From assembly GCA_964234715.1 (NCBI GenBank), contig OZ174275.1: a DNA stretch of 64,000 bases; one strand, written 5' to 3'. This document shows positions 30,401-36,400 of the stretch, piece by piece. Each line of letters begins with the position of its first letter. Position 1 is the first letter of the stretch. The notes beneath the pieces were generated by a model. The model ran no database searches, was not told the DNA's origin, and was given only the letters and a program-made list of their open reading frames with translations. The stretch comes from Podarcis melisellensis. Taxonomy: Eukaryota. Position numbers and translations under genes: made by a program.

Positions 30401-33400
30401 TTCTTAATAAACACATAAATAAAATCTTCCTGATCCTTCTGTTGTAGAACCCTGCTCATCAACATTGTCATGAAAGCTAATAATATTGGTGGGGTGTTTT
30501 TTTCCTTCACAGATCGTGATATTAAGATTGTACGTCCCTTATATAGCGTGGAAATATTTGAGACAGAGACTGCACGTTTTGATACAGAAATCTCTGAGGA
30601 AGATATTCATGCTAACTGGAAACTGAAAGGGGAGCCCTTGACACAGACGCCTGTAAGCAATGCTTTTAAATATTTCCCCACTTCTAAATGAGACTTAGAT
30701 TGCCTAAAATATGCAGATGGAAGAACATAAACTTTTGGAAAATCTTTGGAAGATCTGAGAAAGCACTGTAGGGGTGCTGAGAAAATAATTTCTATATCAA
30801 CACGATTTAAATGGCTGGAATCGTAAATTTACACAACAGAAAATATATAATTCAGGGGGAGCAGTTTTAACGTTAGAAATCTGAAGATTGCTTTTGTAAT
30901 GAAAAGCAATTGTGAGTAGTATGTAAATAATATTTGATAAAAATATGTTGGTTGCAAATGTATCAGGTGCCTCTGGAAGTTAATAACTGTAATCAGTTGG
31001 TTCATTGTAGCCATATATAGGGGTTTTTTTTGTTAATGTTCCCATGTAAACAATTCAGAAAATCAATGTGCATGTTTAGCACATTAACATCTCATTAATG
31101 TTCCCATGTAAACAATTCAGAAAATCAATGTGCATGTTTAGCACATTAACATCTCATTGATCTGGACAATGCGTGGTCCAAGGCCTGAGGTAAAAGTTTT
31201 GCAAAAGTTCAGTAGTTCGTAGCCATTGGTTGTGTGAGCAGATGGAAGGGTTACGCACAGTGCTCTGACCAACTTTAACTCTTCAGCAGCTGGCTGCAAC
31301 ACAGCCAACGCTGTTCAGGAGGGCCTCTGACCCTCCAAAGAGGCTTTTCATGAGGCTCAGTGGGCTGCAGTGGGGAGGGGAAAGATTGGTTGCACAAGCT
31401 CCCTTCTGCTCACACAGTCATTAGATACAGAACAATGGGGTCCAAGTACAGTGGTACCTCGGGTTACATATGCTTCAGGTTACAGACTCTGCAAACCCAG
31501 AAATATTACCTGGGGTTAAGAACTTTGCTTCAGGATGAGAACAGAAATCGTGCAGCAGCGGCACGGCGGCGGCGGGAGGCCCCATTAGCTAAGTGGTGCT
31601 TCAGGTTAAGAACAGTTTCAGGTTAAGAACAGACCTCCAGAACAAATTACGTTCTTAACCCGAGGTACCACTGTATTGTTAATGTACATGCCAGAGAATG
31701 TGTTGTTCTGGTATTTGTACTCCGAGACAGGATGTTAAGAATCATGGTTGCAAAACAGCTGCAGCCAGTACAATGTTTTGTCCCCAAAGGGGAATAAAAG
31801 GTTGCTACCATTTTGAATATCCAAATACCAGAAATATGGACCTGATAAAAGGAAGTGAAAGCTATTAAGCGTTGTACAAACCTTTGCATTTGTTTGCTCT
31901 TGGAAGGACTGTGAAATTAAGGAGGAAGGCAAAAGGCACTGTCTTACACTCTACAACGTGCGCTTGGACCAGGCCGGTAGCGTAGACTTCCAAGCAGCCA
32001 ATGCCAAATCATCTGCCAATCTTCGAGTAAAACGTAAGTGTCTTGCAAGTGTATCTGTAAGATCACTTGTCTTTTACATCAGTAACTGAGCTAAACTGAA
32101 ACAAGTTGGGAGTCAGAGTGGGGCATGTGATCTGTTGTTAATGGAACAGTAAATGAGAAGGAGAGAAGGTCGGGTGAGCTTAAATTGAGGAGTAGTTATT
32201 TGATATAGTTGTGTCACTTATTCTTTCTTTATAAAAGCTTTTTATAAGTTAATTCTGATACTTTTAATTTAGTTATTTAGTTTGTTTGTTTTTAGATCGT
32301 GGGATAGGTATTATATAAAGATTTTCAATTAGTTAATAAGAACAGGTTGTTAGACCACTGGAATCGCCCCTCCTTATTCCAGGATGATTGGCAAGGTAGC
32401 ATAATGAGTTGTTACGAAATCTAAAATATTACAAACGGACTCTCTGCTGTGCTTGGCATTTGGGGTATAAGATCTGAGAGATAACACCATGCTGACATTT
32501 GTGGAAAGTGCCAGTAGCTTGATGGACAGGAACACCCTACACAGTTGGTGGCCACTTGTCTCTCTATCCAATTGTAGACCTTGCTATTTTGGAAGGCGCA
32601 TGCCTTATCTAGCAAGAGGCATGTAGGGCTTGGCAAAGGAGACAGATGCAACGTAGCTTTCTTGCTGATCTTTTCATTTAAAAGGAACAGGCTCCGCAAA
32701 TAGGGAATCTCCAGTGACCAGCCCTCCCCCTGAAAACCCCAAGGGCCCAGATCTAGCCAGGGAATTTAAATAGCCTCTGTACATCATACTCCCTCTCTCT
32801 TGGGGAAAGGCACTATGGCAGTTAGTAAAAGGTGCAGGTGGCTAATCTAAAGATGTTTTCTTCATTCCGTCAAGCACGTGTAATTGGCCTGCTGAGGCCT
32901 CTGAAGGATGTAACTGTAACAGCTGGTGAAACGGCAAACTTTGAATGCGAACTCTCCTATGAGGGAATTGTAGTGGACTGGTTCTTGAAAGGACAGAAAT
33001 TGGAGCCCAGTGACAAGGTATAGAAGACATTCTTTCTCTTCTCCCCTTTTTCCGTGTCAAACCCTATTTCTTTCCCTCTTTCTCTCCTACCCCTCCCTTT
33101 TGTGAGACTGACAGTGCAATCCTATACATACTTACCTGGAAGTAAGCCCCACTGAGCTCAATGGGGCTTGCTTCCGAGTAGAGATCCATAGGATTGCACT
33201 GTAAGGCGCTATTCTAAAATATCATTCAGAAAAATCATTTCCTTCCACATGGTGGAAGATAAAAGTTTCCAAGTGAGAGGTGAAAGGGGTTGGGGAGGTT
33301 TTGTATCAGTGCTAACATAAAGGGATATGTAATATTTTGATATTAGTGGGGAAGTTTATGAATGTTTGCATCTCCTGATTCTTTCCCTTCTCTGAATGTA

Positions 33401-36400
33401 GAGCTGGCATCTAGTTCTGCATATAAGGGGATTAAGGAGATTGAAATTCCATTTCAGGCATTTGAGCAGGCTTCCAGATAACTTTCTCGGTAGATCTGCT
33501 CGCAGAGCATTTCTCACCAGCTATTTTTAACCCTTCATCAAGTGTGCTGTTAGCGCTGAGATGTGAACAGCCTGGAATGCAGTTCATTCAATATTTAAAA
33601 TGTTTTAGCAGCAAGCCATATAGTAGTATAAGTAATCACATGCAGAAGTTGCATTCAGTGAAATATTATTTGGTGCATGCTTTTTTAGATCCTCTGTTTA
33701 AGTCGTTAGAGTGTCTGTTAATGATAGGCTTACGCAGAGAATATTTGCAAAGGAAAACAGAAATATGCCTGCTAAAATAAGGCCTAGTTAGTACAAGTTT
33801 GGAATTACCATAGCCAATTCAGCCTAATCAACACATTAACTTTAAACTAGTATAGCGAGATTTAACTAAATGGATAGATTAATACTTACTGTTCCCATGA
33901 ATAGTATTTTAATGGTGAAGCATTATTAAATGCATCATAAATATTTCAACTTTTATTTCAAATTTCATTTTAATAGTTAGCAAGATTTTATGTTTTGCTT
34001 CTGATTAACCCATCTACATCAGTTTAAATGGGCCTATGATAACACAAACAATGGTGTTTAGGGCACTCCTATCCCAGTCCAGTAAGGGACTATAATCCAT
34101 GCAGAACCAAGCCTCTCCTGACTTCTTCCCAGCTGGACAGGGGAGCTATGATGAAAAGCTTCTTATACAAGTACTGTAGTTCCCCGTTTTGATTGATTTT
34201 GATTATATCAACCCTTTGAAGAAGTTTACAGTTCCAGCAATCAGCTGGTGGATTCAGTCTGCCGACTCCCACAAAACTCTAGAGGCCTTTGGGGCTTGGC
34301 GGCTGATTCAGTACGAAGAGCTGAAATTGCAACAAGAAATCAGAGAGGCCCCAATGCATGCCCAGAGGTGCATGGGTGTATAACTGGGAGTCTTTGTTTA
34401 CCAGCCTATTTAGACAGACATGTGCTAACACAAATGTTTGATATAAGGTTGCAACATGTTTTCTTACCAAATCTATTCTCCTGAACATTCCTTTTTTTAA
34501 AGATTGTGCCCCGTGCTGAAGGCAGAGTTCACACCCTTGTTCTAAGAGATGTGAAACTAACAGATGCTGGAGAAGTCAAACTGACTGCAAAGGATTTCAG
34601 AACTCAAGCAAATCTTTTTGTAAAAGGTAGGCTTCCTAAAGTAACAATTTATTCCATTAGCAGTATGCTAGAGGCTACTGATCTGTGTTAGGCAAAGTGC
34701 ATGATTGGGCCAATCTTTTTCTGCAGTACTTTTAACACATAAAATGCTGAGAAGAATTCTGGCCATAACTCAGTCTTTTAAAAAGATCAGAATGATAGCT
34801 AGCTTTTCAATCTCTTGGGAGGAAAAAATGATGCATGTAGCACCAACATGATTTGTGGGTTTTTTCCCCTCCCTGTCCTCAGAACCACCTGTTGAGTTTA
34901 CTAAGCCTCTTGAGGACCAGACTGTAGAGGAGGAAGCTACTGCAGTTCTGGAGTGTGAAGTATCCAGAGAAAACGCACCAGTGAAATGGTTCAAGAATGG
35001 CCAAGAAATCCACAAGACAAAGAAATATGATATAATTGCTGATGGCAGAGTCAGAAAACTTATCATTCACGGCTGCACACTGGACGATGCTAAAACGTAC
35101 ACATGTGATTCTAAAGATTTCAAGACATCTTGTTTCTTGAACGTTGAACGTAAGTTTTTCTCATAATTTCCTTATAAAGACATAGATACTTGTTTGCATG
35201 ATTCCAAAGGTAGGCATGTTGCAGATATATGGGTGGGTCAATCTCATGGTGCTGTAAAACAAGCAGACCTTTGACTTAAGTGGGTTGGGCTTTTTCTTTC
35301 ATCCACAAAAGTGGGAACATCTACTTTATCATAACTCTATTAGAAATTATTATAACTAAGGCCATTGCTACGAATTGAGATTCACGAATAAGAAAAAAAG
35401 AGATCATTTTCAAACGGGAATTTTTTTCTTCCTTATAGCACCTCATGTTGAGTTCACAAAGCCCCTTACGGATATTGAAGTTAAAGAAAAAGAGGTTGCT
35501 CGGTTTGAATGTGAAATTTCCCGACCAAATGTTCAGGTCTGTAATGTTTGTGTCTCTTCATATTTGCCCTTGTCAATAGCTTTTGCACAGAATCTCACAG
35601 CATTTATTGCAGCCACCAGGAAACATTTTCTATTTTTCTAGACACTAGGGCAGCCCAAAGCATTTAGAAGGTGGAAATTGTGTCTACTAAGAGCTCAAAC
35701 CAAAAGATGATCTAGGTTGTCTGCATCATTCAGTCCCACCTTCACTAGCTCCTTACTATAGTTCTCCAGTTGCCAACATGGTGCCTGAGCAGCTTCATCT
35801 TTTTCACCTCTAAAGATTTCCTTAGGTGCCCTCAAAGCCTCTGAGCACCCTTCCCACCCATCTGCTTTTCAAGGATCAGATTGGCACCTGAGCAGCTTTC
35901 GCAGGGCTGCCACGACATGGAAATATGGATCTGAGGCATGGGTCCTTAAGGATTCTCATAGCCTGATTGTTCCCTCACGCCCACCCCCAGGGAACCCAAC
36001 CCTTCATACCAGCCTGCCATTGGCCAATTCCGCAGGCTGACGCTGAACATGATTTCAAGTTGTGAGTGTGAGCCGAAGCTCTCGCTCCGGCTGGGATCAG
36101 CCCACCACACCCTGTCCTGCATCGTTGGCAGGTAGTTGGGGGGGGGAGTGCTGGTCGTCCCACAAAGCTGCTGCCCTCCTAAAAGGGGTAATCAGACTTC
36201 CAGGACCTTAATAACAAAAACCAGTACTGACAATGAAAATAAAATACACCTATCTGAATGTACATTCTGTCTACATATATTACTTTGGTTATAGAGCCAA
36301 ATAATATGCCCTTTCCAATGGGTGATTGGCACCATCGTCAATTTTTCTAATTCATCTCCACATGTGCAGCTTCCAAATGGGAACAAACATTGGACCCAAT

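Follow-up and report, generated by a model that had tools for sequence, protein, structure and literature searches.

Does the titin gene of a lizard carry the internal promoter known as Cronos, from which a C-terminal isoform of this giant muscle protein is started inside an intron, and, if so, where would its transcript begin? We considered this question in a 64,000-nt stretch of the Podarcis melisellensis genome (contig OZ174275.1; hereafter the window). A sequence-only reading of the window had placed a squamate Cronos promoter at 32470-32880, in the intron before a 143-nt immunoglobulin (Ig) exon, and had given it a core made of a TATA-like motif at 32765 and an initiator near 32795. Our analysis indicates that the last ~430 nt of this intron, which precedes the first-half exon of domain I96 (I96a), are very probably the lizard orthologue of the titin Cronos promoter and 5´ leader. 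The orthology of the intron, the start codon, the interval and the presence of RNA reading from intron to exon all agree with the earlier proposal, but support is lacking for the core that it chose as the place of the main start.

The published Cronos promoters provide the points of reference. In zebrafish, transcription starts 110 bp upstream of exon 116 (e116), and the Met lies 7 residues before the exon; for mouse e223 and human e240, the start is 257 and 256 bp upstream, respectively, and the Met lies 12 residues before the exon (Zou et al., 2015; PMC4720518). A mouse Cronos-specific antibody was raised against the peptide SNTRHFVSSRKA (Swist et al., PMC7478974 supplement). In a word search, the 56-residue lizard open reading frame (ORF) at 32853-33020 gave 66 short ORF matches at 69-88% identity. 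One group of homologues, ~80% identical to the exon product, begins with MSNTRHFLSSRK followed by ARVIGLLRPLKD (ARVIGL), with its Met 12 residues upstream. This start agrees with the mouse peptide, being the same 12-residue extension, which makes the lizard exon orthologous to mouse e223/human e240. By this homology, the intron at 32034-32874 sits directly upstream of the orthologue of zebrafish e116, mouse e223 and human e240. Nine relatives (the L-numbered loci) were compared at the DNA level, including one mammal-like contig, L012, that was picked for its mouse-like peptide; exons were used as queries one by one and were not joined into a spliced model. The exon order I94-I95a-I95b-I96a-I96b-I97 is preserved in L001, L005, L002 and L010. 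Together with the MSNTRHFLSSRK-type homologues, this order upholds the earlier placement of the intron at about the position of human exon 240. An elephant-shark model (UniRef, Callorhinchus milii) has MFSPTSK-ARVIGL at its start, spliced to the next exon. When this model (P0048) was used to look for short spliced ORFs starting at the Cronos Met, only unspliced genomic ORFs and one frog full-length titin fragment were recovered, and the search therefore adds no expression evidence.

A start within the intron is also indicated by the start codon itself. The ATG at 32853, with an A at -3, had been described as reading MFSSFRQ straight into ARVIGLLRP; when recomputed, both the coordinates and the reading proved correct, with the peptide running into the exon through an Ala codon split at the acceptor. 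An in-frame ATG is found at one fixed codon in all eight loci (the window and seven aligned to it), with a purine at -3 in each; L010 has a one-codon deletion relative to the ATG position of the other loci. For 11 neighboring Ig exons of these loci, an upstream in-frame ATG before a stop was sporadic, and never fixed in position. Of 106 related ORFs, 100 have a Met before the exon at one of four positions: -7 (65 ORFs), -5 or -6 (23 ORFs) or -12 (12 ORFs). This count is biased because the ORFs were called from ATG; the locus-by-locus control with 11 exons is free of that bias. The database also does not force a Met pattern, since one fish-like group lacks it. These fish-like I96a homologues (P0047, P0053, P0057, P0060 and P0064) have no Met at -7 and start 19-21 residues upstream (MGxCSLIGGELTL...); they may represent the second titin paralogue of teleosts, one that lacks a Cronos start. 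The lizard Met, 7 residues before the exon, matches the zebrafish report. Given the fixed position in eight loci and the 11-exon control, the conserved Cronos initiator can be identified as the ATG at 32853, in line with the earlier suggestion that it could start a C-terminal isoform, and a protein would be expected to be produced from it.

Conservation extends into the non-coding part of the intron. With the exon and the ATG excluded, blastn aligned 32442-32818 with the mammal-like L012 at 62.9% identity over 383 nt (E 6e-28). The corresponding comparisons gave E 5e-61 for L005, E 1e-19 for L011 and, over 32502-32639, E 1e-8 for the distant L002. The best E among six control introns was 0.02 in the same search, apart from a conserved block at 33382-33599 that is considered below. 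An alignment with the mammalian Cronos intron had been proposed as a check on the promoter claim, and the match to L012, set against control introns at E 0.02 or worse, bears that claim out; the interval put forward, 32470-32880, contains the conserved promoter and leader. Only the nearest relative can be aligned over the 5´ half of the intron. Teleost-like L013 shows no nucleotide similarity upstream of the ATG, and the promoter alignment thus stops short of teleosts. The conserved core common to the loci, which extends across land vertebrates, consists of TGATGGAC, a CCAAT box, TATTTTGGA and an element at the TATA position. Taken with the exon homology, this alignment shows the intron to be orthologous to the Cronos intron of zebrafish, mouse and human.

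RNA reading from the intron into the exon is present in a related lizard. Two runs from this relative, X1 and X2, can be taken as RNA because they contain spliced titin contigs with GT..AG joints at a depth of 69-81; in these contigs, the joints 30652>31907, 32033>32875, 33017>34503 and 34626>34883 are all GT..AG. In X1, a 335-nt contig runs unspliced over 32570-32904 at a depth of 2.7 (also 2.7 over 32692-32849), and in X2, a 167-nt contig covers 32529-32695 at a depth of 3.5. Depth is 0 over the first 495 nt of the intron, as it is over every other non-repeat intron stretch within the 4.7 kb compared. The main X1 contig is interrupted precisely at 32875, assembly-graph behavior that fits an exon with two alternative upstream neighbors. 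A pattern of reads piling up 5´ of the exon was what led Zou et al. to Cronos (PMC4720518), and the intron of the related lizard shows the same pattern. Contigs do not mark 5´ ends; within the intron, the start is placed by homology. Five differences between the relative and the window within 32813-32864 spare both the main ATG and an upstream ATG described below, and are synonymous or stop-to-stop in both ORFs, although their number is small. Two raw-read RNA runs, X23 and X24, contain almost no titin reads; their thousands of reads all fall on an intronic repeat at 31447-31677.

If transcription starts in this intron, which of its elements would direct it? The GATA sites reported earlier (AGATAA at 32479 and CTTATC(T) at 32604-32610) and the four E-boxes (CATTTG at 32496, CAGTTG at 32542, CACTTG at 32553 and CAGATG at 32643) are all present, and we found three further E-boxes at 32569, 32835 and 32875. 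Seven E-boxes, against a mean of 2.4 per 411 nt, place the region in the top 0.8% of segments of that length, whereas two GATA sites are ordinary, since 24% of such segments contain two or more; the promoter interval is without a strict MEF2 or CArG match. As only the E-boxes are enriched, motif counts alone would not carry the claim, and it is by conservation, not by these counts, that the region rises above chance. Judged in this way, the motifs that had been listed as promoter evidence divide: the GATA site at 32479 and the E-box at 32542 are poorly conserved, but the CAGATG, the A/T-rich element and the position of the second GATA site are conserved. The sequence that had been called MEF2-like at 32583 is there, although it is not a strict MEF2 or CArG match. 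The A/T-rich element that corresponds to it has TATTTT.GA (32585-32593) invariant in 8/8 loci, and fits the MEF2 consensus at 8/10 positions and, on the other strand, CArG at 9/10. The most conserved elements, TGATGGAC at 32520 and the CCAAT at 32568, were absent from the earlier list. The TATA-position element is a GATA-type CTTATC in squamates, the second of the GATA sites above, and is canonically TATA-like in L002 (CCATATATAG) and L011 (CTATATGTAG). Position -257 of L012, the mouse start distance, aligns to ~32640, 30-40 nt below the TAT.TAG of this element, and the main start is accordingly predicted near 32640.

Several observations weigh against a Cronos promoter in this intron. The two RNA runs come from a single study, of a relative that is 2-4% diverged. 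Their intronic contigs reach just 3-5% of the spliced depth, near the assembler floor, and extend 70-110 nt above the start predicted from mouse; because they pass that start, initiation may be dispersed or further upstream in lizards, or part of the signal may be pre-mRNA. The label mammal-like was given to L012 from its N-terminal peptide alone, and the assignments of motifs to factors, including PBX/MEIS for TGATGGACAG, are putative and follow consensus sequences. The shallow depth (2.7-3.5 against 69-81) and the reach of the contigs above the homology-predicted start would suit a region that is a conserved enhancer or splicing-control element for full-length titin, without any start in lizards and with pre-mRNA as the source of the intronic RNA. 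Pre-mRNA, however, should cover introns evenly or favor their 5´ parts, and here coverage is confined, in two samples, to the ~345 nt closest to the exon, while ~3 kb of other unique intron sequence has zero depth. Splicing control would also leave unexplained an ATG fixed at one codon in 8/8 loci and the conserved upstream ATG, and the promoter function of the mouse, human and zebrafish orthologues has been demonstrated experimentally (PMC4720518). On balance we regard this explanation as quite improbable.

It is also conceivable that the promoter is real but that its main start is the proximal one of the sequence-only reading, with TTTAAATA at 32765 directing initiation in the pyrimidine run at ~32795 and a leader of only ~60 nt. 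Both the motif and the pyrimidine run are present and are kept in the window, L001, L009 and L011, so that several sauropsid-type loci share them, the X1 depth over 32692-32849 is 2.7, and the arrangement resembles the short zebrafish leader, with its start 110 bp upstream of the exon (PMC4720518). Yet the RNA contigs begin at least 200 nt upstream of this core (at 32570 and 32529, >200 nt from the proposed initiation), the motif is degraded in L008, L005 and L012 (in L012 it is not TATA-like), the pyrimidine run is likewise not conserved in these three, and a more deeply conserved core with an element at the TATA position lies at 32520-32612, with the mouse start mapping to ~32640. We therefore think it unlikely that the main start is proximal; instead, TTTAAATA may serve a second, proximal start comparable to that of zebrafish. 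There is, finally, hardly any chance that the exon is a paralogue of the Cronos exon and the resemblance a coincidence. Titin Ig domains are highly repetitive, and the closest solved structure for the I96a peptide (32877-33017) is the titin tandem 5JDD/5JDE (E 2e-16), which is ahead of other distal Ig domains and which we take to be the proximal I9-I11 tandem. But PDB is without an I96 structure, so that a paralogue tops the list by default, and the exon order around I96a is conserved, as are flanking non-coding blocks that align with a locus encoding the mouse-like Cronos N-terminus.

In our model of the lizard Cronos promoter, muscle transcription factors would bind the conserved core at 32520-32650, composed of TGATGGAC, an E-box, the CCAAT box, the A/T-rich MEF2/CArG-like element and the TATA-position element, probably helped by a downstream MEF2/NKX/TEAD/GATA element at 33382-33599. 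Transcription would begin within the intron and pass the acceptor at 32875 unspliced, and ribosomes would pass a short conserved upstream ORF (uORF) at 32815-32850 before initiating at the ATG at 32853. The predicted product, MFSSFRQ-A followed by Ig domains I96-I105, the whole A-band and the M-band, would be a C-terminal titin isoform. The Cronos product is ~2.3 MDa and is without the Z-disc and most of the I-band portions of titin, and Cronos has been invoked for the more severe cardiomyopathy that results from truncations downstream of human exon 240.

Two parts of this model lie outside the promoter core. The upstream ATG (uATG), in a strong Kozak context, is at the same alignment column in 7/7 alignable loci, including L012; L002 and L013 have a uATG at -80 and -81, respectively. 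The uORF that it opens varies from 5 to 18 codons across loci, without conservation of its peptide, and its stop in L009 overlaps with the initiator (ATGA). The downstream element, in the next intron, shares 69-80% identity with L001, L009, L008, L005 and L010, and aligns with L012 at E 2e-13 and L002 at E 9e-8. It contains a GATA site at 33476, a strict MEF2 site CTATTTTTAA at 33521, an NKX2-5-type TCAAGTG at 33538 and an MCAT motif GGAATG at 33576, all invariant or nearly so in six loci. RNA depth over this element is zero, and it is likely a muscle enhancer.

Table 1. Features in and around the predicted Cronos promoter of the lizard titin gene (coordinates are those of the window)
Feature	Coordinates	Strand	Evidence or remark
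Exon, second half of Ig I95	31907..32033	+	Joints 30652>31907 and 32033>32875; aligns in L001, L005, L011 and L002
Cronos-orthologous intron	32034..32874	+	GT..AG joint, exon orthology and synteny; corresponds to human e239-e240, mouse e222-e223 and zebrafish e115-e116
Conserved non-coding block, putative promoter and 5´ leader of Cronos-type transcript	32442..32852	+	Intron-only blastn
TGATGGACAG, PBX/MEIS-like site	32520..32529	+	TGAT..AC (32520-32527) invariant in 8/8 loci; L011 and L002 read TGATTGACAG
E-box CACTTG	32553..32558	+	CANNTG in 6/8 loci; CAGCTG in L011, lost in L008 and L012
CCAAT box	32568..32572	+	Invariant in 8/8 loci (eight-locus alignment A1)
A/T-rich element CTATTTTGGA	32584..32593	+	The MEF2-like site GCTATTTTGG (32583-32592) of the sequence-only reading
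TATA-position element CCTTATCTAG	32603..32612	+	TAT.TAG columns (32606-32612) invariant in 8/8 loci
Homology-predicted start-site region with near-invariant CAGATG (32643)	32635..32650	+	Distance of the mouse transcription start site transferred
TTTAAATA, TATA-like	32765..32772	+	Kept in window, L001, L009 and L011; degraded in L008, L005 and L012
Pyrimidine run TCCCTCTCTCTT	32790..32801	+	CTCTCTCT-type run kept in squamate loci
uORF, ATG with A at -3 and G at +4, 11 codons, TAA at 32848-32850	32815..32850	+	Stop 2 bases before main ATG
Cronos-type initiator ATG, intron-encoded MFSSFRQ and first base of split Ala codon	32853..32874	+	Same codon in 8/8 loci
Exon, first half of Ig I96, 143 nt	32875..33017	+	Splice joints; orthologue of mouse e223, human e240 and zebrafish e116
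Downstream intronic conserved element, ~220 nt, enhancer-like	33382..33599	+	Cross-locus alignment
Exon, second half of Ig I96	34503..34626	+	Joints 33017>34503 and 34626>34883

The coordinates of these elements are collected in Table 1. In the window, titin lies on the + strand, with PEVK exons to ~22.6 kb, then distal tandem Ig domains, a first fibronectin domain near ~41.3 kb and A-band repeats from there to the end; the reading frame is open across the downstream exons visible in the window. A split Ig domain at 27.5/27.8 kb matches PDB 1TIT, titin I27 (E 1.6e-19), which is I91 in established titin nomenclature. The count from this domain onward makes 32875-33017 the exon for the first half of I96, in agreement with its earlier label; the preceding exon, the presumed counterpart of human e239, would be the last before the internal promoter. 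An Rfam scan of 31000-35000 (E up to 1) gave weak chance matches only, and the conserved blocks are thus not known RNA genes. The repeat at 31447-31677 is an abundant transcribed interspersed repeat: every RNA run reaches a huge depth there (50,000-90,000 for contigs, with raw reads numbering in the hundreds for non-muscle runs), and it contains numerous variant letters as well as chimeric joints. Just past the I96a donor, at 33100-33200, is an inverted-repeat element resembling a short interspersed nuclear element, with moderate RNA depth from elsewhere in the genome and a weak chance match (26 bits) to a miRNA model whose gathering score is 230.

How does the lizard arrangement compare with known internal promoters? 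Dystrophin, another giant muscle gene, has the internal intronic promoters of Dp260, Dp140, Dp116 and Dp71, which likewise give C-terminal isoforms; however, this is a different gene and its promoters have separate unique first exons, whereas the lizard start would extend an internal exon at its 5´ end. Zebrafish Cronos, in the e115-e116 intron of ttn.2 (ttna), has the same half-Ig exon and an intron-encoded Met at -7 (PMC4720518), and its product, from the distal I-band to the M-band, has the extent predicted for the lizard. Its start 110 bp upstream and short leader are unlike what we predict for the lizard, the intron of which is also without nucleotide similarity to the teleost-like locus. 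Mouse and human Cronos, from the intron before e223 and from TTN intron 239 before e240, use the same exon as the lizard, and the block of the mammal-like locus aligns with the lizard over ~380 nt, with TGATGGAC, CCAAT, TATTTTGGA, the TATA-position element and CAGATG in common. The uATG and the downstream intronic element are found in both the lizard and the mammal-like locus. Mammals, in contrast, use the Met at -12, and their -7 codon is not Met, whereas the lizard uses -7. The -12 codon of the lizard is GTG, and a gene caller used this GTG as the start in L001, a close relative. The TATA-position element reads as a GATA site in squamates, and TTTAAATA at 32765 is without a mammalian counterpart.

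In the literature searched, we found no Cronos promoter beyond those of zebrafish, mouse and human, and no Cronos paper was listed when Cronos was combined with uORF and MEF2. The lizard promoter is new but expected, since conservation from fish to human has already been published; what is added by the conserved grammar, uATG and downstream element is modest. A broader reading, which we put forward tentatively and would not quite call probable, is that the Cronos start is a vertebrate-wide regulatory cassette with parts that have not been described. These may comprise a fixed promoter grammar of TGATGGAC, CCAAT, the A/T-rich element and the TATA-position element, a uATG that holds one column from squamates to the mammal-like locus and opens a short uORF ending just before or on the initiator, and the MEF2/NKX2-5/TEAD/GATA element in the next intron.

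For annotation of the lizard genome, the finding points to an alternative first exon and N-terminus for TTN. Existing zebrafish, mouse and induced pluripotent stem cell models would allow mutation of the invariant bases at 32520-32650, of the uATG and of the downstream element. The start codon reaches back to sharks, and the promoter core aligns from squamates to the mammal-like locus and two more distant vertebrate loci. If the cassette reading is true, the uORF would set the amount of Cronos protein made per transcript, the downstream element would drive heart and fast-muscle specificity, and the shift of the initiator from -7 in shark, fish and lizard to -12 in mammals would be a lineage change.

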